Shown here: positions 8,850 through 57,579 of the stretch, in pieces
Numbering within the stretch: the first letter of the stretch is position 1
Layout: the number at the start of each line of letters is the position of its first letter
From: Squalus acanthias
Taxonomy: Eukaryota
Assembly (NCBI GenBank): GCA_030390025.1
Contig: CM059427.1
Location: 186,806,001-186,870,000 of the forward strand
DNA: 64,000 nucleotides
Direction: 5' to 3'
Made by a program: the position numbers and the translations under genes
Notes under the pieces: model-generated
Told to the model about the DNA's origin: nothing
The model's database searches: none
The model's input: the letters and a program-made list of their open reading frames with translations, nothing else

Positions 8850-8937
8850 ATGAGGCTACGATTTTTCTGCAACAAAATGCCAGCTGGTTTGATGTTCAGT
8901 TTCTTTGTGTTTCTACTTCCGTCTGTTTTCACACAAA
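8850..8937 (+). CDS. Signal peptide exon [29 protein letters not shown]
   Basis: Acceptor tttcttacag ends 8827; ATG at 8850; hydrophobic core; phase-1 donor gtaagt at 8938. Confidence 0.8.
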
Positions 8938-11900: not shown

Positions 11901-14900
11901 ATTAACTGCAATAACCAAACTGCTTTTACAGAGGTTGAGCCCACCTTCTTTCACAGCCTTTTCTCCCTTTACAGGCCCAGACATAGCTTTAAAATGCCCA
12001 AACTTGGTTTTTGGTCTTACAGTCTCTTAGGTTAGGCCCAAATGCAATATTTTCACTCTGAGGTAGTTCCAAAAGACAATTTTCCTTAGGTTTTGGGGAT
12101 CTGTAAATTTTGGAAACCTTACAGTATTAACGTTAAATGTCACCGTCACAGCCACAGTTGTCACCTTTCACAGATAAGGCAAAACACCTGGTGGAAAGAG
12201 GCTGCAAGTCAGGTTCCAAGAGCTGGTTTATCTCTGTCACGGCAAGGGGGGAGGATACAGGAACTGGCTGATCGCTGCCCATCTCAGGAAACCCCATCAA
12301 AGGACAAACAGGGTGGAGACCCGACGTAACCGTATCCTGCACCAATTTTTCTCCTCGAGCTCCTGTCCACCTTGATAATGCCCCCTGCAGACCAGGAGTC
12401 GGAGGAGATTTAGAGCCTTTATTTTCTGTAACAAGAAATTTAGCCATGACCTCTCTTTTTATTTTGATTACTTTTTGTAATAATAATGTATGTTACATAG
12501 AATTACACAGTATTTTACAGCACAGAAACATCTCCCTCATGTGCCTACCTATGTTCAGAAAGCTCTGGTAATAGATACACAGAATATCTACTGGAAGTGT
12601 TCTGTTTTTCCCTGTAACACTGCCTGCAGTGAAGGTGACATGATACAGTGCTTTCTCCTCATGTATTACTGCTTCATTGTAACCTTCTCTGGAGTGAACT
12701 CCTCAATGAAGGAGCTTTGCCAGCTTCTTGGGATTGTAATGGGAGAGGATTTCACTCTCCCTTCTTGCCCAATTTTGGATAGATTGTGGTCGGCAGGGGC
12801 AGAAAGTGGGGATGGGGATCCGGCGGGCTGCTCCCTGCAGATTGTCGTCACTTCACTAAATATATGGACCCAAATATGGAGAGATTTATTCAAATTGTGT
12901 GGAGAGGCCAAGTGTTATCAGATGTTACATTCACCATCATTACTGCCATAACAATGCTGGAACATAAGGGACAGCAGCATGTTCCCGGAATCTAGTGTTG
13001 CGTTGGCTGGTGGGAGGGGATTTCAATTTCAAACATCTATCTGAAGCAAAGCAATTGATCATGATCAAAGCAGTTTGATCCCTCCCTCTCCCACGAGTCC
13101 TGCTGGGAGCCCACAATAATTATCGAAATTATGCTGAACTCAGGAAATTCCCCAGGGATCACGGTTTGGGAAGATAGACGGGCACGGAGTCTGTCACACT
13201 GACCTACAGGCAATTGGAAAATCCTGCCTCCCTTTGTTATCGGTAATCCTGTGGGTAGCCTGGTCACTGGTGGTCCAGGAGAACCAACAACGTACTGTGC
13301 ATTGCACAAGAGGAGGGGAGATCACTTTTGGAGATTGCTGACCTGATTTTTGAGCCTGAAGTGATATGACTGCACCAGTACTGTATTCAGTTTTAGGAGA
13401 ATACTGATTATTGTGACGGTATTTCAGATTTCTCAACAATATGGGAGTAACGATTCCCCTTCCACACTCCCAGTAAATGCTGGAAATACGGATTGTGAAA
13501 TTGGACACTGCAGGCCCACGAGGTCAGAGTGCAGTGGCAGAAATTCACCCTCTAATGTCCTAAAGTATCACTGGATTAGGCCAGATTATTCCAGACAGTC
13601 AGCTCTTCACCGGGGTGTGTATGTGTCATTGCTGAATCCGTTGTATATAAAAAATATGACTGTAAATAATGAAGTCCAATATTAATCATTACAAATATGG
13701 GATAAAGTAGTTGTCATTTAAATATTTAAATATTTACATTGTTCCTCTTTCTAACAGGAAACCCAAATCATATTTATTTTTTGGATATGCAAGATGACTT
13801 TCAATTAAACGGACCGGACAATCCTGGGAATGGCCCTGTTGTCTGGGAATGGAAACCACACTCAGGGCAAGAAATCCAGCGGCTGGTTACTTTTCACAAA
13901 AGGAGTTCAGTCTTGTGGGACGCACAATGGAACGATCACTTTAGAAACAGCGACTTGTACCGGATGGTAGAATGGAATTACAGGTCCATTAATCTGAGAA
14001 TTAGAAATGCCACATTTAAATTTGCGGGATCGTTCACCTTGACTCAAACACAGCCGAGTAATAAAATCCTGACACAGCACGAAATATTTGGGATCAAAGG
14101 TGAGTGGGACGAAGTCTAGAAAAGGAACAATAAAATGATTCTCAGTGAATAATTTCATGTGTAATGATGAGAGATTGCCAGGATCACGTGAGATTTATAT
14201 CACCCAGTGCAGAGAGCATCTCTCATTAAAACAACCAGGGGAAAGATTTTGTTCATTGTTTCTCCTGAAATGGTCAACATGAGTAAAAACATTTCGACAA
14301 TTTCACCAGAAATAGCAAACCGAGGAATCTACCCACAGAGAGTATTATGGTCTGTACACTGGAGCAATCTCTGTCAGATGTACTGAATTCTGTTACCAAA
14401 CCAATAGATCCCTTGTAGTAATAATCCTCAGTGCAATGGGACAGGAATAAGATTGGCCAGAGTCACTGCTCCTGATTGCTATCCAGTGAACCTTTTAGAT
14501 GTGTCACTTGGTTGAGGTCCCAGAGGATGTCAAGTGTCCCTGGAACTTGTACTATGACAAGGAGTTAACGCCTTCAGGAAAGCAAGAAGAACATGGCAGA
14601 GAAAAGAGATACATTGGGGGGAATTTTAACCCCAAAAAATGGTTGGCTTGGGGTCGGGTGGGAGGTTACAGAGTTAAAAATCTGAATCCTGGCCCCAACG
14701 CGCCTCCAACCCGCCCACTTCTGGTTTTAACGGAGGTGGGACGGGGGTGGGGGGGCAGTTAACCTGCTCGCAGGAGGTGAGTTCGCACTTTTAATAGTCT
14801 AATGGTGTTGGGTGCCTGATAGTGATCCACCATTTTAAATTTAACTGTGGGCTCGGGGAACCCGCCAGCTAAAGGGTGGCGAGGACTGCTGGATCCAGGG

Positions 14901-17900
14901 TTTCTGCCTCGCTACCCACCCGCAATCGGACCCCTCCTCCCGACCCTTCCGATGTCCCCCCAACCTCACCCTAGGGCTTCCGACACCCCCCCCACGAGAC
15001 CACCGATCTCTGATCGTGCATCTTCCCTTCTGACCTCCCCTCCGGCCTTCCGACCTCCCCCCTCCAGCCTTCCGATCTCTCTCTGATCTCCAATTCCCTC
15101 TCCGGCCTTCCAAACTCCCCACTGCAGCTTTCCAACTGTCCTCTGATCTCCGATACTCCCTCTGGCCTTCCGACCTCCAAACTCTGGCCTTCCAACCTCC
15201 AAACTCTGGCCTTCTGACCTCCCCACTCCGGCGTTCCGACAACCCCACCATTCCCTCTCTGCTCTCTGTGGTCTGGTTCGTCAGGCCTTTACATTCGAGC
15301 CTTTCCTTCTGGCTGTCTGCGGGCGGGAAACAGAGATATTAAATGTTGATCAGGCCCTGTCGCTAAATTCAGTCCTGCCACGCCCTATCTGCCCCCAAAG
15401 CCTTTCCACCATCTACAAGGCACAAGTAAGGACTGTGATGGAATACTCTCCACTTGCCTGGATGAGTGCAGCTCCAACAACACTCAAGAAGCTCGACACC
15501 ATCCAAAATAAAGCAGCCCAATTGATTGACACCCCATCCACCACCTTAAACGTTCACTCCCTGCTCCACCGGCATACTGTGGGTGCAGTGTGTACCATCT
15601 ACAAGATGCATTGCAGCAACTCGCCAAGGCTTCTTCAGCAGCACCTCCCAAACCCACGACCTCTTCCACCTAGAAGGACAAGGGCAGCAGGCGCATGGGA
15701 ACATCACTACCTCAAAGTTCTCCTCCAAGTCACACACCATCCTGACTGAGAAGTATATCGCCGATCCTTCAAAGTCGCTGGGTCAAAATTCTGGAACTTC
15801 CTACCTAACAGCACTGTGGGAGTACCTTCACCACACGGACTGCAGCGGTTCAAGGAGGCGGCTCACCACCACCTTCTCAAGGGCAACTAGGAATGGGCAA
15901 TAAATGCTGGCCTTGCCAGCAACGCCCAGATCCCATAAGCAAATAAAAAAAAATTAAAATTCCGGCCATTGTATCTACGCAAAAATATTTAAAAACCAAA
16001 TCAAAATCTTTAGTTTCTGCCAACTAAGGATGCTGCTCAACAGCTGCACTTTCTGGTTGGTTGATGTGTGTAACATCTGAATGAGGCTGAGGTCACTGTC
16101 AAATGTACTATATATAAAATATAAGCCAATCCTGAAATGTCATAGTGGCCAAAATATGATCTGGGCCTGGACCATTGCTCCTGAGGTGTTGGCCCAAACT
16201 GCACCAGAATGAGTTGACCATAATAGAAAGTCAACTCATTTACATTTGTCAGTGGCACTCATGGCACATAGTGCATGGTACACGAGGAATGTCTCATGGG
16301 TCGGGCACCAGAGTGTTGGGCACCAGCAGCTAATGGATGCCACCATTGGCACAAAAATTCGGCCCTTCCCGGGTGAGTACACAGTCCGTACTCACGCGTA
16401 TTGCTTCCCAAAGTGCTGGTTTCCTGCATTCACGTCGCATGCGCGGGAAACCGGAACTTCCAGTATGGTGAAGGGGGCGGTTCCTAGGTGAACCGCGTGC
16501 GCGCTAGAGGCTGCGCGCATGCAGCACACTTAGATTTTTTTTCAGGTTTCTACGTGAGGGTAAGTATTGAAGATACTACGCTAATGAAAAGGAGGCGTAA
16601 GACCCGTTTTGAACAAGGTAAGTGGTTAATTAAGTATAATTTTAAATATTTTTCAACAGGTTTATCTTTTTTAGATACTTTAAAGAAAGGTAAGTTTATT
16701 TTTATAACTTTTAAAAGGAATTTAAATTTTTTCAAAAATTTAAATTTTTGTTTAATCTGGTTAATTTATTTAACTATAGTTATTTTATAAATGTGATGTT
16801 TTTTTAAATTTATTTTAAGTTTAGCTGTTCTTTTGGGGCCGATTTCAATTCACAGATTTGACAGGTCTCCCAGTCAAATCTATGAATGAAAGATGGTCTG
16901 CTGCCATTGGCTCTCCATGGCCCACGTGATCCCAGGGAACGCATCGCACTAACTGCGCCCCTGGAACACGCAAGCACTGCGCGCCGGCAGTTGGGAGAGG
17001 CCCAGGACCCGAAGTTCCCGTGGGCCCAAAACACAACGGCAGGCGCGGTAGGTAAGAGGGCGCGCGATCCTTACCCCCGCGGCAAGCTGGAGAGGCGAAT
17101 TTCTGGGTCATTGTAATTAAAGTCCCTGTTGAAGATTTGATTCTTACTTGTCATGTTGTAGGTGGGACTGAAAGTCAGGGTGGGCATTTTTAGAACAAGC
17201 CTCTCCTGAAGTGCCATTCCTCATGGACGCTCAATGATTGGAGCCCTGCTCAGGAGCATTTTGGGAAGCCACTAATTTAAATAACGTAATGACTTTTAGC
17301 GTGGATTTTGTGCACAGGCTCCCAGTGCGTGTGTTGGGTGGTCTTACTGAAGTGTGCGAGGCACATTGAGAACAGAGTGGGACTGGAGCCTTCTCCATGT
17401 CTGATAATATGGGCGCTACATTTCCATCACACCCTCCTCTGGTGAGATTCCATCACCTGTCCATTGTGGTGTCGACTTCCACAAATGTCATCCAAACCAT
17501 GTAACCTTAACCTGACCCCGGATACTCCAGCAGGGTCAGGGGTAAAGGTCATCGGCCGCACTCTGGCTCACTTCACGCTGGCAGAGCTGGACTGAGAATT
17601 TTCAGGCTCACTGTGTTATTCTACTGATAAGATGCACTTGTGTGTAATCTGGCCTGAGCCTTTAATGCAGCAAGGTACAAGTGCTGATGATGGGCACATC
17701 CTACAGTCAGTTAGAACCTAATCACTGGATTGTACATGTCACTACTTACACTAAATCTTATTGATCTGTTTTTCACAGTTGAGTCAAGTCCACAGAGTGC
17801 TGTGGTGGGCAGTGAAGTTACACTCAGCTGTACCATCTCCAAACTCTCAGATACAGTCAGTCTTCAGTGGAAACAGAGAGACTCATCTCAGCAGAACAGG

Positions 17901-20900
17901 ATGAACACTGATCAGATCCGACTAAATAACACAGTCTTTCTGATAGTCAAACATGTTGCAGTAGAGGATAAGGAGTTGTACGCGTGTGAAGTGCAGGAAG
18001 ATGGATCCATTATTCTCACAGGAAAAGCAGATTTTTCTGTGGACCAGGGTAAGTGCAGTTACCTCACAGTAGATATTAAAGAGTTACTAATATAAAACTG
18101 TTACATATAAAGTGGAGTCATACATGTCAACCATCAGCACTTCATGCTTACAGTCAGCATGTGGGGGCCCGGTGCACATATCAGCATTGAACAAAAAACT
18201 GGCCTCTCGCCCCTCAATGCCACTTCTAACCGAGTTCTGCTGCTATTTGAAGTGATTCCAGCTGCTGCATACTCTAGGCTTCAAATAAGCATTCAGCTGG
18301 AGCAGGACTGAGGGAAGAGGGAAAGGCAGGGAATCAATGGCCATGAACGGAGAGGGAAGGATGGAAATGATGGCAATGTAGAGGAGAGATGGTGGGCAGA
18401 GGGAAATGACAGAGGCTGGGAGTGGGGCTTTGGGGGAGGAAGAGGGGAAAAGCTGAGAGTGGAACTTTGGAGTAGAAGATAAGAATTTGCATTTGTGTGA
18501 AGTGTAGGAAAAAGACTCTGTTATTAAAATAGCATCAAAACTATTGATGTGGATCAGGGTGAGGCCAGAACTACCTTACAGTAGATATTAAATAGTTACT
18601 GAAATAACACTGTTACACACAAAGTACAGGGAGCACAGAGACAGCATATGCTTTTACTACAGACTGGGACCTTATTTTCTCTTTGGAACATTGGTGTAAA
18701 TATAACATTGCAATACAGTGGGCAAATATCAGTAACAAGGTCTAGATGGATCTGACAATAAATAGCTAAAGAGTTGAAGGTGAACAGCAACATTCTCACA
18801 CAGCTCATCAGTTACCAAAACACAGAGACAATTCTTTTCTAAATATGGTTCACTTTACTCACTGCAAGGGCACAGCATTAAAGTCCATCCCTGAATATCT
18901 ATTCAGTGCTCTTCCAATACACACACATATGGCCGGAGTTTTCCAGAGTGGTAGCGGGGGCGATTGGTGGCGGGTCGAGTGGGAAAGTTATTCATAGAAT
19001 CATAGAATCATAGAAATTTACAGCACAGAATGAGGCCATTCAGCCCATCTTGTCCGTGCCGGCCGACAAAGAGCTATCTACCCTAATCCCACTTTCCAGC
19101 ACTTGGCTCCGTAGCCTTGGAGGTTCCGGCACTTCAAGCGCATATCCAAGTACATTTTAAATGTGGTGAGGGTCTCTACCTCTACCACCCTTTCAGGCAG
19201 TGAGTTCCAGACACCCACCGCCCTCTGGGTGAAAACAATTCTCCACAAATCACCTCCAAACTTCCGACCAATTACTTTAAATCTGTGCCCCCTGGTTATT
19301 GACCCTGCTGCTAAGGGGAATAGGTCCTTCCTATCTACTCTATCTAGGCCTCTCATAATTTTATACAACTCAATTAATTCCCTTCTCAGCCTCCTCTGTT
19401 CCATAGAAAATAACCCCAGCCTATCCAATCTTTCCTCAGAGCTAAAATTCCCGAGCCCAGGGAATATCCTTGAAAATCTCCTCTGCACCCTCTCTAGTGT
19501 AATCACATCCTTCCTGTAATGTGATGACCAGAACTGTACGAAGTATGCTAGCTGCGATTTAACTAGTGTTTTATACAGTTTAAGCATAACCTCCCTGCTC
19601 TTATATTCTATGCCTCAGCTAATAAAGGCAAGTATCCCGGAGGCCTTCTTAACACCTTATCTACCTGTCCTGCTACCTTCAGGGAGCTGTGGACATGCAC
19701 TCCAAGGTGCCTCTGATCTTCTGCACTTCTCAGTGTCCTACCATTTATAATGTATTCCCTTGCCTTGTTAACCCTCCCCAAATGCATTACCTCACACTTC
19801 TCCAGATTGCATTCCAATTGCCACTGTTCTGCCCACCTGAATAATCTTCCTGCAGTCTGCAGCTTTCTTCTTCATTATCAACCACACGGCCAATTGTTGT
19901 ATCATTTGCAAACTTCTTAATCATACTTCCTACATTCAAGTACAAATCATTGCTATTTACTACAAAAAACAAAGGACCCAGTACTGAGCGCTGCGGAACC
20001 CCACTGGAACCAGCCTTCCAGTCACAAAAACACACTTCAACCATTACCCTTTGTTTCCTGCCTCTGAGCCAATTTTGGATCCAACTTGCCACTTTGCCTT
20101 GGATCCCATGGGCTTTTACTTTCATGACCAGTCAGCCATGCGGGACCTTATCAAAAGCCTTGCTAAAATCTATATAGACTACAGCAAATGCAATACTGTC
20201 ATCGACCCTCTTTGTTACCTCCTCAAAAATTTCAATCAAGTTAGTCAGACACAACCTTCCCTTAACAAATCCATGCTGACTGTCCCTGATTAATCCGTGT
20301 CTTTCTAAATGAAGATTTATCCTGTCCCTCAGAATTGTTTCCAATAATTTTCCCACCACTGAGGTTAGGCTGATTGGTCTGCAATTACTTGGTCTATCCC
20401 TTTCTTCCTTTTTAAACAAGGGTACCACGTTAGCAGTCCTCCAGTCCTCCAGTACCACAGCTGTAGCCAGAGAGGATTGGAAAATGATGGTCAGAGCCTC
20501 TGCTATTTCCTCTCTTACTTCTCTTAACAGTCTGGGATACATTTCATCTAGGCCTGGGGATTTATCCACTTTCAAAGATGCTAAACCACTTAATACTTCC
20601 TCTTTCACAATGTTTATTTCATCTAATATTTCACACTCCTCCTCCCTGATTGCAATTTCTGCATCATCCCTCTCTTTTGTGAAAACAGACGCAAAGTATT
20701 CATTAAGAACCATACCCATGTCTTCCGCTTCCACACACAGGTTACCTTTATGGTCCTTAATAGGCACTACTCTTATTTTAGTTATCCTCTTGCTCTTAAT
20801 GGACCAGAAATTCGGCCCTCCACGGGTGAGTACACGCTATGTACTCACCCGTGGACCTAACGAAAGTGCCGGTTTCACGCATGCACTGCGCATGCGCTGG

Positions 20901-47900: not shown

Positions 47901-50900
47901 CTTGCAGTAGGTGTTAAATAGTTACTGATATAAAACTGTTACACACAAAGTACAGCGAGCACAGGCACCACTGTGGGCTTTTACTGCAGAATGTGGTCCT
48001 TGTTTTTGCCCTGGAACATGGGTGTAAATATAAAATGGTGACATTAAGAGCTGATGTGAACAACCAGGTGAACTCACTGGATTCATTTCGATTCACATGT
48101 ATGAATCAAAAAGAATAAAATCCATCAATCTATAAAAGCAACTGCCATTCCAGTCTATATTGGAATAGAGAAATACAAACAAATTAAATGAACACAACAC
48201 AGGTGTTACAAGATTCGGGTCTTTCCTGAGACATTCTCTTGGGTACAGTGTGCTGCTCACTCACAAAACTGGTCTGAGTGTCTTACATTTAGGGATGTTC
48301 TCATACTGCCCAATATCTGACTATATGACAGCATAAGCTAAGGGTGTAAGAATAAGCCCCCCTTGTGACCTGAACTGGATATTTGTGTCTATCGCACGTC
48401 TACATCATTAGTCATTTTGAAAGTTTCCAAAAAAACCCTTGGTGAGACAAGGCCAGTAATGAATTGTTAAACTGCTTTATTTCACAGCAAGTGAACATAC
48501 AGAATAACAGTTATGATCAGATTCACTTAGTTCAATCAGTCTCACCTGTCTTTGTGTAGCAGTTCTAAATAATGAACATGCTACACTGCTCCAAACCAAT
48601 GGGTTAAATTCTTGACTTAACCAACTTAACTCCTCACGATGTGGTCTCCTCTTCATTTGGGAGACCAAACGCAGATTGGGTGACCGCTTTGTGGAACACT
48701 TCCGTTCAGTCCGTAAGCGTGACCCTGAGCTTCCGGTCGCCTGTCACTTTAATTCTCCGCTCCACTCCCACTCTGATCTCTCTGTCCTCGGCCTCTTACA
48801 CTGTTCCAACGAAGCTCAACGTAAGCTCGAGGAACAGCACCTCATCTTTCGATTAGGCACTTTACAGCCTTCTGGACTTAACATTGAGTTCAACAATTTC
48901 AGACTATAACCTCGGCCACTATTTTTTTTCCTTTGTTTTCTCACATGGCAGCTGTTGATGATTCTTCCATCGCCATTTACACCTCATCGAGAGTCATCCT
49001 TTGTTTCTTAACTTGTCCCATTACCTCTCCTTTTGCCTTGCACCATCATCCCTTTTGTCTTTTAATCTCTTCCGCCCTCCAGCCTATCACAGACATTCCC
49101 TTTTGTTCTTTCCTCCCTGTCCCTGTCCCTGCTCCACACTTGCTTAAAAATCTGTTACTTCTCTCACATTTTCCAGTTCTAACGAAGGGTCCTCGATGGG
49201 AAACGTTAGTTCTGTTTCTCTCTGTCGATGCTGTCTGAGCTGCTGAGTGTTTCCAGCATTTTCTGTTGTTATTTCAGATTTCCAGCATCCACAGTATTTT
49301 GCTATTAACTCCTAACTACCCCCCTACATGTTAAACCTCTGAGCCTGTCCCAAGCTTGCCCTTGCAACTTTCTGTTTCCAGCCAGACTGACATTGCACCA
49401 TTTGATTGAGCTCCCTGCCTGCCCATGTCTCTCTCTCTATATTACCGTCTTCTGTTAACAACCCGAGGGAACCAAAGATGCCGATCACAATGGGTATGAG
49501 GCATTTATTGATAATCGATTGCTGAGGCAGTTTAACAAATTGATTATCTACAGTCCACGGGGAAACAACATCACTTTGACGGGGGCCATGTTTGGGGCAG
49601 ATGGACTTTGTAGCCCAACCCGGCGTTTAAACAATAGGCAGCCTGGGCCGGCAGCCAGTGTATCCGGGTCCCAGCCGATTTCCCTGTCCCAATGCTGCAC
49701 TCCCAGCTGGCTTATGCCAGGAGGGCGCTGAATGGCCCTGTGGGAATTCAGAACATCTGTATCTCAGCAGCTATATAAATCTAACACCTTGTTTCCTGTC
49801 TCTCTATTTCAGATTTACACAACAAGAGTTACACACTTTATCGGTCAGACACAGATCACAGTGAACTCTCCCTGATTTGTGAAGCTGAATCTGAGATCAT
49901 TAAAACTAAATGGACTTGGAGGTCACGTCATTTTCAGAATCAAGAGAAAGAAATAGCTTCTACTTTCAGATCTAAGCCTATCGATGTAAACAGGACCTAC
50001 TTTGGGAGTCGACTGGTGCCCACAGTGGGAAATCTTAATGGCAAGAACTTCAGTGTGAGGATTGTCCCCGTACTGTTTGAAGATGCCGGAGTTTACACAT
50101 GTTCTCTGGGGTTATTGAATTATGTGACCATTAAACTAATCACAGTTAAAGGTAGGAGACAGAATGCTGCCATTGTTTTCAATGATAAAGTTATTGTTTA
50201 AAATCTAAATGATTTTCTTGTTTCCACAGTCACAGCTGAACCATCTGATGCAGTGACTGAGGGAGACACCGTTACCCTGACCTGCTCTGTCTCTGATGTC
50301 ACTGAATCAATGAGACTTGTTTGGATCAGTAGTGATGGCAAAACTGTTGAAGAGAAAACTTTTAAGGACCAGAAGCAGGAAGAGGATTTGTTACGACTAA
50401 TTATTCAGAAAGCCAATAGAGACAGAAGGAACTGGACATGTGTTTTGTTTCATCAAAACACGCCCAGCGTTTTAATTCCATATTATCTGAAGGTTAACAG
50501 TAAGTGTCTCAGGTTTTTCTCTTTGTAACCTCCATAGAAAGTTCATCATCATAGAATCACAGAAATTTACAGCACAGAAGGAGGCCATACGGCCCATCTT
50601 GTCCGTGCCGACCGACAAAGAGCTATCTACCCTAATACCACTTTCCAGCACTTGGTCCGTAGCCTTGTAGGTTATGGCATTCCAAGTAATTTTTAAACGT
50701 GATGAGGGTCTCTACCTCTACCGCTCTGTCAGGCAGTGAGTTCCAGACCCTCACCACCCTCTGGGTGAAAAGATTTCTCCTCAAATCCCCTCTAAACCTC
50801 TGACCAATTACTTTAAATCTATGCCCCCTGGTTATTGACCCCTCTGCTAAGGGAAATAGGTCCTTCCTATCCACTCTATCTAGGCCCCTCATAATTTTAT

Positions 50901-53900
50901 ACACCTCAATTAGGTCTCCCCTCAGCCTCCTCTGTTCCAAAGAAAACAACCTCAGCCTATCCAATCTTTCCTCATAGCTAAAATTCTCCAGCCAAGCAAC
51001 ATCCTCGTAAATCTCCTCTGCACCCCTTCTCGTGCAATCACATTCTTTCTGTAATGTGGTGACCAGAACTATACACAGTATTCTAGCTGCGGTCTATCTA
51101 GTGTTTTTTTCAGTTCAAGCATAACCTCCCTGCTCTTAATATCTATGCCTTGGCTAATAAAGCAATTATCTCAAATGCCTTCTTAACCACCTTATCTATC
51201 TGTCCTGCTACCTTCAAGGATCTGTGGACATGCACTCCAAGGTCCGACTGACCTTCTGCACTTCTCAGTGTCCTACAATTTAATGTGTATTCCTTTGCCT
51301 TGTTAGCTCTCCCCAAATGCATTACCTCACACTTCTCCAGATTGAATTCGATTTGCCACTGTTCTGCCCACCTAACCAGTCCATTGATATCTTCCTGCAG
51401 TCTGCAGCTTTCTTCTTCATTATCAACCACACGGCTAATTTTTGTATCATCTGCAAACTTCTTCATCATACTTCCTACATTCAAGTCCAAATAGGTGATA
51501 TATACCACAAAAGGCAAATGGCCCAGTACTGAGCCCTGCGGAACCCCACTGGAAACAGCCTGCCAGTCACAAAAACACCCTTCAACCATTACCCTTTGTT
51601 TCCTGCCTCTGAGACAATTTTGGATCCAACTTGCCACTTTGCCTTGGACCCCATGGGCTTTTACTTTCGTGACCAGTCTGCCATGTGGGACCTTATCAAA
51701 AGCCTTGCTAAAATCCATATAGACTACATCAAACACACTACCCTCAAGTTCTTGCTGCTCTTTTGTTATGATAACCTTTTACTTTTCATATTCTATTGCA
51801 CTCCACATTACTCAGAGTTTAATCATAGGTGTTCACATATAAACAGTTTAACATCAAAAGTCAAACTATACAGCTCAAAGCAATGGAAGAAGAAATACAG
51901 TTCAGTGTTCGGTCAGACGCATTGTCAGGCAGATATAGAGGGAATACATCATTCGAGGTACAATTGTGGGGAAGGAGAGAGATGCCCTGACCTGCTCTGT
52001 CTCTGATGTCACTGAATCAATGAGATTTTTTTTGTATCAGAAATTAAAGCAACATTGTTGAATAGAAATCGTTCAATGGATGGAATTGGGAAGGGAAATC
52101 ATTGAGACTGATTATTCAGAAAGCTGACAGAGACAGAGGGAACTGGATATGTGTTTTGTTTTATCAAAACAGCCCCAGGTTTTACCCCTGTACTATCTGG
52201 AGCCCAGTGCTAAATTACTCCGCGTTTGCGCTCAATAGAAAATTATTGTCACTGATTGTTCTTTTTGCCAGAGATGATCACTCATCCTTTGTGTCCTATT
52301 TCTCTCCACTATTGCTAACAGCCTCCACATTCATAATTATTCACACCACAGTTTGAAACCACAAGAAAAGCCACACAGTGAAATTTGCCCCCTTGTCTCA
52401 GACACATTGGGGGTAATTTTGACTTCAGGCGACAGAGTCAAACGAGCGATATCGGATCAGCCGCCCGTTATACATCGCTTCTGATTTTCAGTTCCATTGA
52501 TTTCAAAGTCAAAATTGTATGGGAAGGTTGGAAGGAGCATGCAGTTTGAGATATGGAGGCTGAAGGCATGTGGCCTGGTCAGAGAGTGAGGAGAGGGAAG
52601 AGTATGTTTCCTGTCTCGCCGCCCATGATTTTCTGATCAGCACGGGCTGTGTGTGAGGCTCTGTCACTGGGGAGAGCCTCAGAAAATCTCCCCTCAGATA
52701 ACTCAGCACAGCCTGGGATCGAGTTTGGAACCTTCCCGGTCCGGATGTCTCAGATACGCATTGAGACAAGGCAAGCATTTATTTTTCAGAGCAAAAGGGT
52801 ACAGAAGCCGTTTCCATTGGTTTTCAGACCCCAAATCAATCCGAATCTTTAGGCAGATTGTTAAAAAAGAAATCACAGCAAAAAACAATTCCCAGCTGCA
52901 AAAATTGCAATTGCAAGTCTCCACTCTTCAGGCTCAGAGAAACTCTTCTTCTCTGCCTGTCTCAGCTGATCCTGGAAACATCGGAGCCTCATCACTCTCA
53001 TTCTAACTGAGGGCTCGTGCATTGTGAGCACAAGAGCAGGAAACTCGAGGCTCTGGGTGGCCTCCTGAAACAGGCTTTAGGCGTCTTCCACATGCAATTC
53101 TGGGTCCTAACGCCAACTGGAGGACCCCGATTGAAATTGGTGTACAGATGGGCGGAGCTTATGCCGGGCCAGCTCCAGCTCACTGTACCAGGTTTTGAGT
53201 GGATGAACCACTGGTGTTTAACAGGACCGTTGGAGGCCGCTCAAGAAATGGCCGTAAAACCTTTTAACAGTTACATTTCTGTGGAGCCAGGGGGAGATGG
53301 AGTGCTTCTCCTGGCTCCACAATAATACTGCGGCCTGGGTTCGACCTCCACACAATCCCACGGGTTTGGCTCCCCAAAGGACCTACCTGTGGGCTGGTTC
53401 AGCATCGAAGCTGGCTGGAATTCATCAGGCCCCCACTGGGACACAACGATTGGCGTCTGCGGATCGTCTGTTTCATTCTAATGAGGGCTGATGGTGAATT
53501 TCATCTGGCCCCAGGCCGGCAGGGACCGGCGCTCAAAGCAATCACTTCGCCAACTTGATGCCCATTTTGGGCCCAAGTTCAATTTCTCAGACTTGGAACC
53601 TGCAGATTTAAAAGCAGAGGAATGAAAGGGGACCTTAAAGAGCTTTATAAGATAATGAATGGAACAGAAAATATTGGTCTGGAGGAAAATCTCTGGACTG
53701 GTATAAGAGGCAGTTGGAGACTGTGATGATGAGACTGTAAGATTACATCGAAGGATTAGCTGGAGGAACCGACTATCTTCCCTCATCCCTTGTCTTTATT
53801 TATCCTCATAATAATAAGGTTGAGTCCATGAGGGTGCTGCAGAAAATGAAAACAAAGGTGTAGTGTTAGGAGATTTAAATCAGTCAGGAAATATTAAAAG

Positions 53901-56900
53901 GAGGAAAAAGCATCAATGGTACATGGCTGAAATAAAGAACAGAGGGAAAAGAAACAAAAAGAAGCATCAGCTATACTTGGTTAAAAAACCTCACAGGATT
54001 GAAGGAAAGCAAAAGCCAGTTAGACCGTTAAACTTACTGTGAATGCAGCTCTATCACCAACGTTGTTTGTGCCGGATTCTCACACAGGTCTTGTGATTCA
54101 CTGAGCAGTGGGAATTCCTACAGAGTATCCGTGATAGGCACCAGACAGCAATTCACCACCTCAACAGCACCTGTCCACGCACTGAGTGTTAATAATAGGC
54201 TCAGCAATATTACAAGGCAAGGTTTCACACCGAGCAGCACAGTGCGTGGATCCTGCGTTCGCTCCCACACTAGAAACCCCGCCAGAGGAACTTGGGGTCG
54301 ATGTGAACTATCGGGTGTCTGACCGGCGGAGCGGGAGGGCGATGGACGGCCGCCCGATGGTGCTGACGCAGGCCCGGTCCATGTTGACGGACGGGCCTCA
54401 TTAGCATCACACCGGCAGGCCTTGGGCAGAAATCGATGGGCCAACCGCCTGACTCCACCCGCCCAGCGCTAGGCCCGGGAGAAGATCGCCGCGGCCACAG
54501 TGACTGCAGGAATGGGGGGAAGGGGGGCTGAGCCATTCCCGGCCATTTTCCGGGACATTATCATCCTGATTCCACCAGCCGGGAGGCCTCAAAATTCAAC
54601 CACTCACTCCCTGAACAGTGGGATTATAGGTCATTGAATACAATAGTACATTGAGGCTTGCAAACCAGATATTAGAGAAGACAATGACATTGATATGGAG
54701 AGTAAACTAAAGACAAATGATTGAGGATAACATGGAAGATCACATTCAATGTTCTGTTTAATAGTTTAAAATTAGGTTTGATAATCTTGACCATGATCAA
54801 TGCCATGGGAGATGACCCAGTCGATCATAATTATAACGGAAGTCTGTCTACTGATGAAATTGTCCATTTATATCAAGTACTTACCTCATCTAGTGTTACA
54901 ATATTATATTAATTAAGATTTTGAAATAAATATTAAATTAAATGTACCATAGATAAACATTACAACAACACACAAAACTTTCAAAAACATGCATGGTAGC
55001 ACTGTTAAACATTAATAGTTTCAACAAAATTGCACTTTGTCAAAATAGGTGTTTTTTAAGTGAGTGCCAGTTACAGATCTGAGGCTGTCTCACGCCGAGA
55101 TTGGGAACTCACCACCTGGGGAATCTCAGGAGTGAATCTGTATTCTGCCCCTCTGGTCAGGACAACACTTTCACATCCAGTTTGTCAGTTTAGACAATGA
55201 ATGACCCAATTTTGAGTTTATTCACTCACTTTTCATTCACTCAGAGCTGCTCACTTTAATTCTAAACCATTGCACCCACAAGAATCTGATGAAAATAGTC
55301 AAATCCAGACACATAAAATGTGACAAAAAGAACACAACGTGGACTTGGTCTTGATGGAAATATTTGGTTCTCTGGTTCCCAGTGTTTAAAGCAGAATGTT
55401 TTCACTTTCCACATCTTTTATAGAATGACTGGCAGGAGTATTTAAATATTAAACGAGATGGAGAGTGAAACTAAAATATCAACTTTGTCCTTCACAGTGA
55501 GAGCGAGACCACTTCCGGAGATTTGGATCATCACAGTTTCGGGCTACTTGTTGGTTAAACTGGGCGTTGCTGTTGGACTAATTTGCTGCTTGAAGAGGAT
55601 GACCAGAGTAAGAATTTCTTTAAGCTTTCCAGTAAATCAGGAATTAGTTCCGAGCTGTCACTTGACACTGAGAAAACTGATGTTCGTTGAACTGATATTA
55701 TGTGGTCACAAACTGTATTTTAAAGTTTCATTTAAATATTGTACATTGTATTGAATTTAAAGGAATCATCAGTTAAAGAAAGTAATTGTTCCAAATTTGG
55801 TGAAATCTTAGAGCTTTGAATATTTTTCCTGATTCAAACGGCAATAACTGCCCTGCTCCCACTTTCCATCAGGCTCTGAGAAAGGAATCAGGGCGATCTC
55901 GGAGGGCCATACCTGATTATCAATGAATGGACAATGCTCAAACTAGGAGCCCAATCTTTTAATATTTTTTATTGATTATCACAAATATTCCTCTTTGAAA
56001 TTTGTAACTTGAAAGTTGTCAGAAACCAATATTTGAACAGTTAAAGCACAACCAGTAAAAATTACTGTAAATGGAAGTTACTAATGTATTCTGTGACAAT
56101 TAATGAGTTTGATCATTTTAATGTGTGCTGTTATTCTTGTTGCTGTGGCCTGGTGGCGCAAGAGAGCTGCAGTAGTGTTGGGCCAAAAATGAATTTGTCG
56201 CTCTGTAAACCACTTCCTCTGTGGCAGGTTTGGTTTACCTGATTTACTCATCGTCAAATCTCAGTCGATTCAAAAGCAAAGTTTCTGTTTCGGAGAGCCC
56301 TGTCGGGTTTGTGTTAGAGGAAGAAGTGTTTCAAGGCTGTGTGCTTCTGGGTGAAGCGAGGCGTTGTAGAATGGGAACTATTGGGGTGAGAGGCACAGAA
56401 ATGTGGTAACAAGTGGAAAGTTTGAACTGACATGAAGGATGTGAGGTAATCTGTATTGTTCAGGATGTTTACATAGAATTACATAGAATTTACAGCACAG
56501 AAACAGAACATTCGGCCCAGCAGGTCTGTGTCGGTGTTTATGCTCCACACGAGCCTCCTCCCACCCTACTTCATCTCACCCTATCGACATATCCTTCTAT
56601 TCCTTTCTCCCTCATGTACTTATCCAGCTTCCCCTTAAATCAATCTGTACTATTCGCCTAAAACACTGCATATGGTTGCGAGTTCCAGCGAGGAAGGAAT
56701 AGGGAAATCTCTGAGGGCCAAACCTGATTATCAATGAATGAAATAAAAACAGAAAATGAATGAACTTTGCTCACACTAGGAGCCCAATATTCTAGTTTTA
56801 AAATTTTTCATTGAATTTACTGTCACAAATATTCCTCTTGGAAATTGAAAATTGGTAACTTGCATGTCGTCAGAAACCAATTTTATTTGAACAGTTGTTT

Positions 56901-57579
56901 GAAAAAGCACAACCAGTAAAAATTACAATAAACTGAACAGTACGATTGTATTTAGTGAAAATTAATGATTATTTATTATTTAAAAATTAAAATTAACTTT
57001 ACTTAAGATCACAGCTCAGGGAGGTAACAAGAGAGACAGAATCAGTAGCTTTAGTAGGAGAGCATTGTTCTGTCAGAAGTAGAGTTGTAAGTTCAAGGAG
57101 GTAACTTTACTGGTGAGGTCAGTCAACCACAGGGAGAACCTCTTCGAAATGTGGTCACACTATGGCCATGAACTTCGAGCTCAATGGTGTGACCTTATTT
57201 TACATTCATACATTCATAGTAGGAAAAATCTTCCACAGTATCTTCTATCAGTAACTGGAGTTAGTTTATCATTTTAATCAGGTCTGTTCCTTCCAATTAC
57301 TGAGCCTTTAATTGTTGAAATTATCTCATTAACACTGAGCCAGTGATGTGTGGGTCATGGTCTGTTCTGTTGCCCATTCTGTAAAATTACTCCTCTATTC
57401 GACTTCCTCTTTATCCATCACTTCCAGTCCAGTGTTTATTATTGAAGGATAAGCTCTTTATTTAAAGCACATTTCTTGCCTCTTGTCAGATATCGAACAG
57501 CGGGAATCCACACGAGGCGACAGGAAATGAAACAGATGATTCACAAGGAGCCAGCGCATTTCAGACCCTTGAACTCTGA
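8850..57579 (+). CDS. Spliced gene for a type I membrane IgSF receptor with 8 Ig domains (V*-C2-V-C2)x2, CD4/LAG-3-related, Lys in TM. Exons 8850-8937, 13758-14099, 17779-18048, 28233-28571, 28650-28919, 34574-34918, 47612-47884, 49813-50151, 50230-50499, 55498-55607, then 55873-55926 or 57490-57579
   Basis: All exons have AG/GT boundaries. The eight Ig exons are phase 1-1 with lengths divisible by 3 (342, 270, 339, 270, 345, 273, 339, 270) and no internal stops. The joined frame is open for 882 codons to the end of the TM exon. Hydrophobic leader and TM are present. Confidence 0.85.
9067..9718. mobile_element. MITE-like element (related to 2549-3155)
   Basis: Termini ggggtagagtttctgct / agcggaaacaccaggcc; shared internal ctcaaactcatttgcatatcg. 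Confidence 0.55.
10433..12123 (-). mobile_element. Solo LTR (family of 45243-46494)
   Basis: TGTAGG...CCTTACA ends; both terminal segments are homologous to 45243-46494; no clean TSD. Confidence 0.7.
13758..14099 (+). CDS. Ig domain 1 exon (V-like, no cysteines)
   Basis: ctaacag acceptor, gtgagt donor; VVWEWKP (C strand), [18 protein letters not shown] (E/F strands); paralog of 34574-34918. Confidence 0.85.
14616..15967. mobile_element. Harbinger-like non-autonomous element with internal minisatellite and nested LINE
   Basis: TIR ggggggaattttaa / ttaaaattccggcc (12/14 match); TSD ATT; ccttccgacctcc-type repeats at ~14990-15240. Confidence 0.65.
15397..15952 (+). mobile_element. Non-LTR retrotransposon 3' fragment (CR1/L2 group)
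   Basis: [32 protein letters not shown]; ends aataaatgctggccttgccagc...A-tail. Confidence 0.8.
16348..17109. mobile_element. PIF/Harbinger-type MITE
   Basis: Degenerate TIRs, 3-bp TSD ATT; collinear with 20801-21563. Confidence 0.75.
17779..18048 (+). CDS. Ig domain 2 exon (C2-like)
   Basis: tttcacag acceptor, gtaagt donor; VTLSC...LQWK...DKELYAC. Confidence 0.9.
18467..18710 (+). pseudogene. Partial pseudo-exon copy of the D2/D6 exon 3' end plus adjacent intron
   Basis: ttggagtagaagataagaatttgcatttgtgtgaagtgTAGgaa...gatgtggatcagg|gtgagg aligns to the D2/D6 ends; downstream sequence matches 47885-48040. Confidence 0.7.
18993..22520 (-). mobile_element. CR1 LINE (degenerate ORF2) interrupted by a MITE
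   Basis: Reverse-strand endonuclease and RT fragments ([17 protein letters not shown]..); (atcataga)n tail at the left end. Confidence 0.9.
20801..21563. mobile_element. PIF/Harbinger-type MITE inserted in CR1
   Basis: TIR ggaccagaaattcggc / gccgaatttctggccc (15/16); TSD AAT; the empty site cttaatgtatttataaaac is seen in the related CR1 at ~42847. Confidence 0.85.
22530..24318. mobile_element. Harbinger deletion derivative with Myb/SANT-like gene remnant on the - strand
   Basis: [25 protein letters not shown] at 23790-23882; segments homologous to 31600-33600. Confidence 0.7.
25297..27548. mobile_element. Harbinger transposon, internally deleted: Myb/SANT gene (+, exon from 25568 to 25807 and exon from 26150) and DDE transposase remnant (-)
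   Basis: Perfect 12-bp TIR ggccgcgatttt / aaaatcgcggcc; TSD TCT; [18 protein letters not shown]; [24 protein letters not shown]. Confidence 0.88.
28233..28571 (+). CDS. Ig domain 3 exon (V-set)
   Basis: attgcag acceptor, gtagga donor; LDLIC...WTW...FSVRI...EDAGVYTC. Confidence 0.9.
28650..28919 (+). CDS. Ig domain 4 exon (C2, WxC motif)
   Basis: 78-bp intron upstream; EGDTVTLTC...VVW...GNWIC; gtaagt donor. Confidence 0.9.
29072..29796 (+). mobile_element. Non-LTR retrotransposon 3' fragment
   Basis: Same family as 15397-15952; A-tail; empty site visible at ~52700. Confidence 0.8.
30234..30995. mobile_element. Harbinger-type non-autonomous element
   Basis: Perfect 13-bp TIR gggctcgattttg / caaaatcgagccc; TSD AAA; (GTA)/(GTG) microsatellite at 30663-30695. 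Confidence 0.8.
31546..33945 (+). mobile_element. Harbinger transposon with frameshifted DDE transposase (32096-33143)
   Basis: [51 protein letters not shown]; frameshift near 32480; outer boundaries approximate. Confidence 0.85.
34574..34918 (+). CDS. Ig domain 5 exon (V-like, D1 paralog)
   Basis: cttgcag acceptor, gtaagt donor; [41 protein letters not shown]. Confidence 0.88.
37111..42826 (+). mobile_element. CR1 LINE, middle layer (near-complete ORF2, frameshift near 38640)
   Basis: 510-aa and 207-aa ORFs; ...CNISK at 39280 resumes as FADDTKL at 41899; (ttctatgt)n tail. Confidence 0.9.
39281..41898 (+). mobile_element. CR1 LINE, inner layer, 5'-truncated, uninterrupted 831-aa ORF2
   Basis: ORF 39304-41799 with partial endonuclease and full RT; (tatctatg)n tail. 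Confidence 0.93.
44559..47478. mobile_element. Probable solo LTR-like element hosting a nested solo LTR
   Basis: TGAAGG...CCTTCACA ends flanked by CATA/CATA; degenerate ~180-bp internal repeats at 46660-47200. Confidence 0.5.
45243..46494 (-). mobile_element. Solo LTR
   Basis: TGTAGG...CCTTACA ends; 4-bp TSD AAGC; reverse-strand AATAAA near 45391. Confidence 0.82.
47612..47884 (+). CDS. Ig domain 6 exon (C2-like, D2 paralog, F-strand Cys replaced by Trp)
   Basis: tttttacag acceptor, gtaagt donor; [19 protein letters not shown]...NLYTWEVQE. Not in the ORF track because it has no start codon. Confidence 0.85.
48634..49300 (+). mobile_element. Penelope-like element 3' fragment (GIY-YIG endonuclease)
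   Basis: [45 protein letters not shown]. Confidence 0.85.
49813..50151 (+). CDS. Ig domain 7 exon (V-set, D3 paralog)
   Basis: atttcag acceptor, gtagga donor; LSLIC...WTW...EDAGVYTC. Confidence 0.9.
50230..50499 (+). CDS. Ig domain 8 exon (C2, WxC motif, D4 paralog)
   Basis: 78-bp intron upstream; EGDTVTLTC...LVW...RNWTC; gtaagt donor. Confidence 0.9.
50546..51735 (-). mobile_element. CR1 LINE 3' fragment
   Basis: [30 protein letters not shown] on the reverse strand. Confidence 0.9.
51985..52209 (+). pseudogene. 5'-truncated pseudo-exon copy of D4/D8
   Basis: ccctgacctgctctgtctctgatgtcactgaatcaatgaga is identical to D4/D8; retains [20 protein letters not shown]; has indels, no acceptor, and the donor is changed to ctaaat. 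Confidence 0.8.
55498..55607 (+). CDS. Transmembrane exon [37 protein letters not shown]
   Basis: ccttcacag acceptor in phase 1; ~24-aa hydrophobic stretch with central Lys, juxtamembrane CC and basic stop-transfer KR; phase-0 donor gtaaga. Confidence 0.82.
55873..55926 (+). CDS. Candidate terminal exon A, short tail [17 protein letters not shown]
   Basis: Pyrimidine-rich acceptor ctcccactttccatcag; open in phase 0; a degenerate copy lies at ~56688-56960. Confidence 0.5.
   Translation, partial: ALRKESGRSRRAIPDYQ
56470..56688 (-). mobile_element. Short CR1 3' end
   Basis: acatagaattacatagaatttacagcacag tail in reverse orientation. Confidence 0.65.
57490..57579 (+). CDS. Candidate terminal exon B, tail [29 protein letters not shown]
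   Basis: Strong acceptor atttcttgcctcttgtcag; 29 open codons in phase 0; AATAAA downstream at 58273-58278. Confidence 0.6.
   Translation: MSNSGNPHEATGNETDDSQGASAFQTLEL

Follow-up and report, generated by a model that had tools for sequence, protein, structure and literature searches.

An eight-Ig-domain receptor gene of Squalus acanthias, probably the activating partner in a paired receptor system

Clusters of paired activating and inhibitory immunoglobulin (Ig) receptors are known from mammals, where KIR and LILR are the examples, and from bony fish, which carry LITR, NITR and DICP. In these clusters, related ectodomains are joined either to a tail with ITIMs or to a basic transmembrane (TM) segment followed by a short tail. 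To my knowledge, no paired Ig receptor cluster has been named in sharks or rays, and literature and database searches found no named counterpart in these fishes. A second point of reference is CD4 and LAG-3, a family whose characteristic feature, according to sections 3.1 and 3.6 of Takizawa (2023), is WxC in both C2 domains, and whose shark members are described in section 3.2 of the same paper as having no intron inside D1. In this article I describe a gene of Squalus acanthias that an earlier note, made from the letters alone, had placed as a divergent branch of the CD4/LAG-3 family, and I argue that it is probably an intact type I membrane glycoprotein gene encoding the activating partner in a paired receptor system.

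The window, that is, the whole stretch of 64,000 nucleotides analysed, contains no N and holds one eight-Ig receptor gene and otherwise only transposons. The gene lies on the + strand at 8850-57579 and is made up of a leader, eight Ig exons, a TM exon and tail exons, given here in coordinate order together with two relic exons:

8850..8937, + strand: leader exon, ATG at 8850, second in-frame ATG at 8877, phase 1 donor
13758..14099, + strand: D1 exon, type A, a family-specific Ig-like domain without a Cys pair
17779..18048, + strand: D2 exon, type B, C2/I-type, with the ordinary C..W..YxC pattern
18464..18708, + strand: D2/D6-type relic, 3' half of the exon, with a stop codon
28233..28571, + strand: D3 exon, type C, V-type Ig domain with a Cys pair
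28650..28919, + strand: D4 exon, type D, C2-type with WxC (GNWIC)
34574..34918, + strand: D5 exon, type A, paralogue of D1
47612..47884, + strand: D6 exon, type B, Trp in place of the second Cys (YTWEV)
49813..50151, + strand: D7 exon, type C, paralogue of D3
50230..50499, + strand: D8 exon, type D, paralogue of D4 (RNWTC)
about 51984..52223, + strand: third D4/D8-type relic, frameshifted, outside the coding model
55498..55607, + strand: TM exon, central lysine, phase 0 donor
55873..55926, + strand: short candidate terminal exon, 17 codons and a stop, weakly supported
57490..57579, + strand: terminal exon with homologue support, 29 codons and a stop, shortened by one extra base

All eight Ig exons are open, lie between a pyrimidine-rich acceptor ending in cag and a gta or gtg donor, and are in phase 1 at both ends, with an intron of just 78 nt between D3 and D4. 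Every one of the 19 splice sites follows the consensus, the leader, Ig and TM exons (about 2.7 kb of coding sequence) are free of stops and frameshifts, and the summed exon lengths give about 899 or 911 codons according to which terminal exon is used. The earlier note's description of a leader, eight in-phase Ig exons, a TM segment and a tail, about 900 residues in all and hidden among transposons, thus holds in full at its coordinates on the + strand, the introns containing a LINE, with ORFs for endonuclease and reverse transcriptase, as well as a Harbinger DDE ORF. As for the relics, 18464-18708 matches 47789-48036 at 78% (blastn), while 51984-52223 is matched in two frames by tblastn and at 80% to D4 by blastn, the likeness to D4 extending into the downstream flanks (blastn).

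Each exon, translated alone, has RefSeq/UniRef matches with E from 1e-35 to 1e-76, and consecutive exons align to contiguous residues of those same homologues, so that the exon set is not a product of chance. The highest identities found are to two Pristiophorus japonicus proteins, UPI00398F80FE (P0056, eight Ig domains) and UPI00398F1307 (P0086), and the exon junctions of the window agree with both. Along P0056 the exons follow one another from the leader (residues 1-29) and D1 (31-143) to D8 (762-850), and the junctions leave a single residue unaligned, the split codon, or, at D4-D5, two; on P0086, exon-by-exon mapping places D5-D8 first, then TM on residues 471-506 and the tail on 508-533, and the codon split between D8 and TM encodes Met in both genes (...KVN-M-RARPLP...). 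The 29-residue leader translation aligns with residues 1-29 of P0056 at 76% identity and with 1-28 of P0006 and P0059, by which the upstream ATG at 8850 is supported.

The eight domains form the order A-B-C-D twice, and the two paralogous four-domain units that had been claimed are borne out for all four pairs, both by amino-acid identity in tblastn (D1/D5 51%, D2/D6 65%, D3/D7 72%, D4/D8 73%) and by hhalign on family alignments, which gives each pair a probability of 100%. D1 and D5 carry the type A motif GPDNPGNG...VWEW.PHSGQ and have no Cys pair; they have no Pfam match, and their profile finds no PDB match at E<=10. In a family profile search the 3' half of D1 together with D2 aligns to NCAM Ig1-Ig2, and it is on this partial alignment and on length that D1 and D5 are here called V-like. 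D2 matches the Pfam models Ig_2 (2.9e-08), Ig_3 and I-set, D2, D4, D6 and D8 all match C2/I-type models, and D3 and D7 reach V-set scores of 25.9 and 20.7 bits against a cut-off of 26. The change of the second Cys to Trp in D6 is nearly invariant in a 20-protein family alignment, and is therefore a family trait and not decay.

The doubling is no peculiarity of this gene. The order ABCDABCD is found in 30 of 110 fetched relatives (ABCD in 31), in 27 of which each position has as its best match the window domain of the same number, and in the trees sharks and rays occur together both in the starred clade of D1-position domains (96) and in that of D4-position domains (99); the four-domain duplication is thus old and shared, and predates the shark-ray split. 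D5 is 89-91% identical to the position-5 domains of Pristiophorus and Heptranchias proteins. D1 evolves faster than D5, with end branches of 0.06-0.68 for D1-position rows (window D1 0.25) as against 0.01-0.19 for D5-position rows, and with identities to P0056 of 69% for D1, 89% for D5 and 96% for D6.

A profile of D1/D5 retrieved 37 representatives at E<=1e-3 among 1,835,955,588 proteins (26 at E<=1e-10), all confined to the receptor family with this ABCD cassette and coming from sharks, rays, chimaera, sturgeon and eel, almost all as "uncharacterized protein". Names were looked up for 23 of the 37 and for seven other family proteins; 22 of the 23, from chondrichthyans, sturgeons, an eel and one cod relative, are called "uncharacterized", "hypothetical" or "Ig-like domain-containing", and one is an unnamed Logan entry. 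The ABCD receptors are a multigene family of sharks, rays and chimaera, to which sturgeon, paddlefish, bichir and eel add more distant members, and the cassette is present in it twice or in as many as about 15-20 repeats. The window gene belongs to it, having the type A domain, the A-B-C-D order and the Cys-to-Trp change in D6. The literature searched contained no paper describing this lineage, which upholds the "possibly undescribed" of the earlier note in that respect; its proteins, however, already stand in RefSeq/UniRef as "uncharacterized protein" and, in one nurse shark GenBank entry, as "obscurin-like protein".

Among these entries, Pristis pectinata XP_051869512.1 (LOC127569165, P0060, 875 aa, "uncharacterized protein") is like the window gene in having D1 to D8, a lysine TM and a very short tail, with per-domain identities of 63-81% and 74% in TM. 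It differs in coming from a ray, in ending a few residues past TM and in having no counterpart of the 57490 tail exon, and, as a computed model, it has no study to back it. P0056 differs in its uncharged TM and ITIM tail, both absent from the window, whereas P0086 shares the lysine TM (86%) and tail (81%), but is a partial model whose tail is about eight residues longer. The nurse shark protein AGQ17915.1 (V9NJF3, P0075, 916 aa) has eight domains in the same order at 51-78% identity per domain, but an uncharged TM, and its "obscurin-like" name is a similarity label; from its GenBank accession it is a laboratory submission and presumably transcript-derived. No paper mentioning it was found in the literature searched, and its source may lie in supplements outside that search.

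The sole TM exon found in the window has a lysine at its centre, as the earlier note had said of a charged TM, and no ITIM-type TM or tail exon was found there. This segment is 74-86% identical to those of P0086, P0006 and P0060, and the lysine-TM module is also present in proteins of Pristiophorus, Pristis, Hypanus and Chiloscyllium, nine fetched proteins of four genera having it (P0006, P0040, P0086, P0121, P0008, P0022, P0060, P0025 and P0082). They are the minority: in most relatives that share this ectodomain, an uncharged TM is combined with a long tail bearing two ITIM-like motifs, and the 20-protein consensus likewise shows an uncharged TM and the ITIM-like IHYGSI and VIYAQI. The paired-receptor pattern is therefore found in the family, of which the window holds the lysine-TM form only, and the genes may be clustered with ITIM-bearing neighbours, to judge from RefSeq proteins that share a chromosome-sized contig.

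Of the two candidate terminal exons, 57490-57579 maps directly after TM on P0086 (81%) and P0006 (67%), and 55873-55926 has a single match, at 47% identity and E 0.005, to the end of P0064. Relative to P0006, P0040 and P0086 of Pristiophorus the former carries a one-base insertion: after ...QTL the homologues read NSD(T/P)DL..., which the window has in the +1 frame. The insertion, which may reflect either incipient decay or a mistake in the assembly, costs no more than about eight residues at the C-terminus, and the tail has no known motifs. An apparent LAG-3 motif, (F/Y)xxL(D/E), was rejected, because its FQTLE is a product of the insertion and the three homologues read LQTLNSD. Cx(C/H) occurs in neither tail, in agreement with the earlier statement that the CD4 CxC/CxH Lck motif is absent.

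How, then, does the gene stand to CD4 and LAG-3? It shares with them a V-C2-V-C2 unit to which domain lengths and patterns fit, here present twice, the WxC of the last C2 domain and, as far as the cited section of Takizawa (2023) describes sharks, the lack of an intron in D1; the intron-split D1 that the earlier note had listed as a contrast to CD4/LAG-3 consequently fails in these animals. The WxC named in that note is present in D4 (NWIC) and D8 (NWTC), but not in D2 (YAC) and D6 (YTW), and the family consensus is the same. The window gene further differs in its doubled cassette and in a D1-type domain with no detectable relative, and the ABCD family in having ITIM tails or a lysine TM instead of Cx(C/H) or the LAG-3 motif, neither of which is conserved, and in being a multigene cluster where CD4 and LAG-3 are single genes. 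Kinship is suggested by three PDB profile searches (8-Ig, 4-Ig and D4-type), which are not mutually independent and each of which ranks CD4 and LAG-3 among its first 16. LAG-3 ranks 4th (1.7e-06) and CD4 6th (4.6e-06) with the 8-Ig profile, whose alignment spans the V E-G strands and the whole C2 with WxC on WxC; CD4 ranks 3rd (2.1e-12) and LAG-3 8th (2.4e-10) with the 4-Ig profile; and with the D4-type profile CD4 takes ranks 2 to 8 among 968 sequences at E<=1, while LAG-3 D2 aligns end to end (1-87 on 150-236, E 9e-05). All 18 rows of the D4-type alignment have the F-strand Cys, and nearly all have a Trp two positions ahead of it; Atlas look-alikes of P0006 include two CD4 clusters at 0.96, as a lead only. 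Against this, PD-L1 (4.5e-08), B7-H3, CEA (4.3e-13), pIgR (2e-12) and SYG-2 (1.3e-06) score equally well or better, each CD4 score adds up partial matches that are non-significant alone, searches with single exons show no preference for CD4/LAG-3, nothing named CD4 or LAG-3 is among the 37, 64 and 12 hits of three homology searches, and the CD4-specific Pfam model PF05790 matches 2 of 27 family members (best E 0.0051). By these results, membership in the CD4/LAG-3 family as had been proposed is suggestive at most. That the ABCD family is nonetheless a true branch, its C-D module and the CD4/LAG-3 V-C2 sharing a more recent ancestor with each other than with other Ig domains, I regard as possible but doubtful; at this deeper level it would be compatible with the paired-receptor explanation. 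Alternatively, the cassette may be closer to B7/butyrophilin, CEACAM, pIgR-like or G6f-like proteins and its WxC convergent. In the PDB the 8-Ig profile matches PD-L1 and the four-Ig B7-H3 best, CEA and pIgR head the 4-Ig search, D3 alone matches pIgR and MXRA8 first, NCBI labels one isoform "CEACAM5-like", and Atlas places G6f-like clusters at 0.97, above CD4. Yet the PD-L1 score comes partly from an aligned TM region, long multi-domain chains accumulate score by addition, none of these proteins matches the D4-type domain end to end as LAG-3 D2 does, and the feature-based Atlas scores are leads only; teleost G6f-like, described in PMC3528668 as an ITAM-bearing thrombocyte collagen receptor, also differs in having that ITAM of its own. 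I consider this alternative unlikely.

Two further readings concern the window copy itself. In RNA-like data a D4-D5-type splice is used: the joint 28917->34573 has a single intervening letter, agrees with the splice predicted for D4|D5 apart from one substitution, and is found in one contig each of runs X1 and X10, the shorter side having only 27 letters. D4 and D5 are covered by RNA-like contigs, and the unique intron bins 31140-31539 and 34340-34539 have zero depth in all four runs. This evidence covers one of ten junctions, and the RNA nature of the runs is a guess of the tool. The transcripts joining D4 to D5 that the earlier note had set as a check are thus seen in part, although the exon contigs differ by 2-5% from the window and may stem from a close paralogue, another individual or another species. 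Such divergence, the substituted joint, the tail insertion, nearby relic exons and transposon-filled introns would all fit a decaying or silent paralogue, with the contigs coming from a close relative in the cluster; the long open coding sequence with its intact splice sites, the familial nature of the D6 Trp and the slight cost of the insertion make this improbable. Still less probable is that the locus mostly yields four-Ig products (D1-D4, or D5-D8 with TM) by exon skipping, or is two genes. The common phase 1 would let any cassette be skipped in frame, RefSeq has isoforms without single domains (e.g., P0042, P0080 and P0083), and four-Ig lysine-TM proteins exist (P0006 and P0022), but no second leader or second TM exon was found in the window, the D4-D5 joint is present in two runs, and the 30 eight-domain models in other species include one with a lysine TM.

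The reading that I prefer, an intact activating receptor, would work as follows. A signal peptide would direct to the membrane a protein with the cassette twice, a lysine-bearing TM helix and a short tail without signalling motifs; the fast-evolving, membrane-distal part of the ectodomain, D1 foremost, may bind ligand; the lysine would pair with an acidic TM residue of an ITAM adaptor, DAP12-like or FcR-gamma-like, and the adaptor would deliver the signal, presumably in immune cells. The adaptor pairing is proposed from a single residue, by likeness to KIR, LILR and teleost LITR. The ABCD family differs from these and from NITR and DICP in having no sequence relation to them past the Ig fold, in a cassette that mixes V-like and C2 domains, and in adaptor use that is putative.

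For the window alone the meaning is the more modest one of a single intact activating-type eight-Ig member, a similar protein being already predicted in sawfish. The family is of wider interest, as it is large, nameless in databases, built on an unusual four-domain cassette and conserved over sharks, rays and chimaera, lineages that split some 400 million years ago or more. Its type A domain has no detectable relative outside the family, and its WxC C2 domain, being weakly but repeatedly linked to CD4/LAG-3, bears on the origin of the CD4/LAG-3 cassette. It is conceivable, if rather unlikely, that the ABCD receptors are a surviving sister lineage of CD4/LAG-3 from early jawed vertebrates, an ancient family with a V-C2 (WxC) cassette that cartilaginous fishes and basal ray-finned fishes kept as a large activating and inhibitory cluster, whereas teleosts and tetrapods lost it. 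In that case MHC-like ligands might be bound by its members, and the family would show CD4/LAG-3-type roles before or beside MHC class II co-reception.

The receptor gene at 8850-57579 is a model supported by homologous proteins and, at the D4-D5 junction alone, by reads. Its exons, and two relics of them, lie in sequence that has an N count of zero and abounds in LINE and DNA-transposon open reading frames; domain types A, B, C and D denote D1/D5, D2/D6, D3/D7 and D4/D8.

Exons and relics of the eight-Ig receptor gene
8850-8937, +, leader exon
13758-14099, +, D1 Ig exon
17779-18048, +, D2 Ig exon
18464-18708, relic, half of a D2-type exon
28233-28571, +, D3 Ig exon
28650-28919, +, D4 Ig exon
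34574-34918, +, D5 Ig exon
47612-47884, +, D6 Ig exon
49813-50151, +, D7 Ig exon
50230-50499, +, D8 Ig exon
about 51984-52223, frameshifted relic of a third D4/D8-type exon (D8x)
55498-55607, +, transmembrane (TM) exon
55873-55926, +, short candidate terminal exon
57490-57579, +, candidate terminal exon

All eight Ig exons have an open frame, a pyrimidine tract and cag before them, gta or gtg after them and phase 1 at both ends, and these borders bear out the leader, eight in-phase Ig exons and TM exon proposed in the earlier note; the 3' end of the TM exon is in phase 0, and the summed exon lengths predict about 899 or 911 codons, depending on the terminal exon. The window was searched exon by exon, and full-length comparisons used natural database proteins. 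Aligned in this way to the eight-Ig, ITIM-tailed Pristiophorus japonicus protein UPI00398F80FE (P0056), the separately translated exons run contiguously through leader (1-29), D1 (31-143), D2 (145-233), D3 (235-351) and D4 (353-440), and continue with D5 (443-556), D6 (558-647), D7 (649-760) and D8 (762-850). On a partial model from the same species with a lysine TM and tail, UPI00398F1307 (P0086), D5-D8 map in order, followed by the TM exon (471-506) and then, at 507-533, by the 57490 exon, whose alignment starts with its second residue (508), and the codon split between D8 and TM encodes Met as predicted, the same residue as in P0086. Cysteine loss in D6 was considered as a sign of decay and ruled out, this being a family trait.

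Reads bear on the D4-D5 junction through a run search with D7-D8 as the query, where four small runs from one study, labelled 'RNA?' by the tool's guess, hold 0.52-0.58 of the sampled words. In each of two of these runs, X1 and X10, a single contig (region 28740-34739) jumps from 28917 to 34573 with one intervening letter, its shorter side being 27 letters long; apart from A>T at 28918, this is the predicted splice 28919|34574 to the base. None of the four runs has any depth in the unique intron bins 31140-31539 and 34340-34539, and D4 and D5 are covered by contigs. A D4-D5 joint of the kind that the earlier note wanted checked is present in X1 and X10, with the reservations that the RNA label is guessed and that the exon contigs, 2-5% divergent from the window, may come from a close paralogue, another individual or another species. 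A Harbinger/PIF-type transposase ORF in the same intron (32412-33143, +; DDE_Tnp_4, 1.6e-35) is also covered by contigs from the RNA-like runs (95-99% likeness), and transcription of copies of the element is therefore possible; just 3' of D4, at 28940-29939, summed contig depth in all four runs is in the thousands, which points to an abundant repeat with copies in transcripts.

That the receptor consists of two paralogous units (D1~D5, D2~D6, D3~D7, D4~D8), as claimed from the sequence earlier, is confirmed by tblastn searches of the window with the individual exons, with identities of 51% for D1/D5, 65% for D2/D6, 72% for D3/D7 and 73% for D4/D8, and by hhalign run on segments of a family alignment of 20 proteins, which gives 100% probability for each of these pairs, 72-87% for the two C2 types against each other and only 10-14% for the two V-like types. 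In nucleotide sequence, D3-D4 and D7-D8 align as blocks over 799 bases with 83% identity, and the 78-base intron falls within the alignment. The doubling predates the shark-ray split, as judged from type A and type D domain trees (52 or 53 rows each, quick method, SH-aLRT, rooted on four distant four-Ig proteins), where D1-position domains of sharks, rays and the window form a single starred clade (96), as do D4-position domains (99); D5-position domains cluster at support 80 and D8-position domains are not one clade, and two labels in these trees are off, belonging to one N-terminally truncated protein and one Pristiophorus protein with a D4-like last domain. Terminal branches range over 0.06-0.68 for D1-position domains (0.25 for the window's D1) and are much shorter, 0.01-0.19, at the D5 position. 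Across species, the membrane-proximal D5-D8 are better conserved than D1-D4, with identities to P0056 of 79-96% versus 69-85% and shorter branches.

The second unit has a more complex history than a single clean doubling, since the D8x relic retains the downstream flank of D4 (29018-30152 matches 52647-53052 at 84-88%), which D8 does not have, and a LINE fragment (50548-51741) sits between D8 and this relic; its frameshift rules out D8x as a ninth domain. The D5-D6 intron contains a near-complete LINE in the gene's own orientation (37114-41799, +), with ORFs of 510, 207 and 831 aa and endonuclease (Exo_endo_phos) and reverse transcriptase (RVT_1, 1.8e-31) domains. Two stretches, 84% and 77% identical, recur between 10433-12123 in the leader-D1 intron and 45243-46494 in the D5-D6 intron and are probably a shared repeat outside the duplication.

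How widely such receptors occur was gauged with a D1 + D5 profile against 1,835,955,588 representative proteins, giving 37 representatives at E<=1e-3, 26 at E<=1e-10 and 8 at E<=1e-30. Names were looked up for 23 of the 37, together with seven other family proteins; 22 of the 23 are 'uncharacterized', 'hypothetical' or 'Ig-like domain-containing' and one is an unnamed Logan entry. The named proteins come from sharks (Scyliorhinus, Heterodontus, Hemiscyllium, Pristiophorus, Heptranchias, Chiloscyllium), rays (Narcine, Mobula, Hemitrygon, Pristis, Rhinoraja, Amblyraja), the chimaera Callorhinchus, sturgeons, the eel Anguilla and, as a weak match, one cod relative. With a 974-aa Mobula protein as the query there are 64 matches, about half of them 850-1030 aa long, from more than 15 elasmobranch species, including a nurse-shark GenBank entry labelled 'obscurin-like protein' (AGQ17915.1); the word 'obscurin' is absent from the main text of Venkatesh 2014 (PMC3964593). 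Mapping the window domains onto 110 fetched proteins placed at least one domain in 109, with the order ABCDABCD in 30 and ABCD in 31, and in 27 of the 30 the best match at every position is the same-numbered window domain. The cassette can also be repeated well past two copies, as in a catshark protein with 15 domains, one from Heptranchias with 12 and a 2139-aa eel protein with about 20 (P0001, P0041 and P0018), some of which may be fused gene models. A profile of distant four-Ig members, scored on only the 8000 candidates sharing most words, found only 'uncharacterized' proteins of sturgeon, paddlefish and bichir and 'CD22-like' proteins of cyprinids. Literature searches found no paper on this family, which the supplements to Takizawa 2023 and Venkatesh 2014 might mention. 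The family itself seems undescribed; the eight-Ig architecture, even with a lysine TM, is already in public databases as computed models, so the window gene is an additional member and not a new kind.

Kinship of this family to CD4 and LAG-3, as the earlier note proposed, I consider possible but rather doubtful. In its favour are the V-like/C2/V/C2 order of the window unit and the WxC motif of the D4-type domains, whose F-strand Cys never varies in an alignment of 18 rows and whose Trp, two positions ahead of it, hardly does. Against PDB, in three profile searches that are not independent of each other, the eight-Ig profile (A4) matched PD-L1 (4.5e-08, a score partly from an aligned TM region), B7-H3 (3.8e-07), LAG-3 (1.7e-06, rank 4; B-strand Cys, Trp and WxC all in register) and CD4 (4.6e-06, rank 6); the four-Ig profile (A6) matched CEA (4.3e-13), pIgR (2e-12), CD4 (2.1e-12, rank 3), NCAM (2.9e-11) and LAG-3 (2.4e-10, rank 8); and the D4-type profile (A7) matched SYG-2 (1.3e-06), CD4 (6.6e-06, ranks 2-8, as sums of partial matches) and LAG-3 (9e-05, rank 16), the last end to end on its D2 (1-87 on 150-236). 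For the four-Ig, lysine-TM Pristiophorus homologue P0006, Atlas placed CD4 clusters at 0.96, below contactin-2 and G6f-like at 0.97. On the other side, WxC is absent from window D2 and D6, and the gene is without CD4 or LAG-3 tail motifs. The D1/D5 profile has zero PDB matches at E<=10 for the type A domain, single exons show no CD4/LAG-3 preference in PDB (D1 matches to designed TPR proteins being spurious) and hit only generic Ig models in Pfam, with none for D1/D5, and PF05790, the Pfam model marking CD4, matches 2 of 27 family members (best E 0.0051). No match named CD4 or LAG-3 came from the D1/D5 profile, Mobula-protein or distant four-Ig profile searches. An intron-split D1, previously set out as a contrast to CD4/LAG-3, does not discriminate, since shark CD4 and LAG-3 are also described as lacking a D1 intron in section 3.2 of Takizawa 2023 (PMC10768021).

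The TM exon carries a lysine near the centre of the hydrophobic stretch, a module also present in nine fetched proteins (four Pristiophorus, three Pristis, one Chiloscyllium, one Hypanus), among which the Pristis protein XP_051869512.1 is an eight-Ig member; the P0086 TM and tail as a query returned only three Pristiophorus proteins among 29 candidates and should therefore not be taken as a count of lysine-TM forms. A consensus built from 20 eight-Ig proteins instead shows a TM free of charged residues, followed by a long tail in which the motifs IHYGSI and VIYAQI occur. The possibility that the window offers an ITIM-type ending as an alternative was dropped, since a tblastn query with nine C-terminal ends of that kind turned up no matching TM/tail exons there. 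In Pristiophorus models the lysine TM is followed by the tail that the 57490 exon encodes. These tails continue after ...QTL as NSD(T/P)DL..., which the window reads in the +1 frame, so that the window has one extra base and a stop about eight residues early; a LAG-3-like FxxLE inhibitory tail is ruled out, its motif being created by this insertion and not conserved. The 55873 exon has a weak match only, and a degenerate second copy of it with its 3' flank (55873-55960) was seen by eye about 800 bases downstream, at 56690-56745.

Paired inhibitory and activating immune receptors such as KIR, LILR and LITR combine related ectodomains with one of two endings, an ITIM tail or a short tail preceded by a basic residue in the TM. 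Closely related ectodomains in the present family divide in this way, and on the strength of that split the window gene can be read as the activating form, which by analogy would be the adaptor-coupled member of a paired system. Its TM lysine would pair with the adaptor, expression would be expected in immune cells, and the fast-evolving outer domains may bind the ligand.
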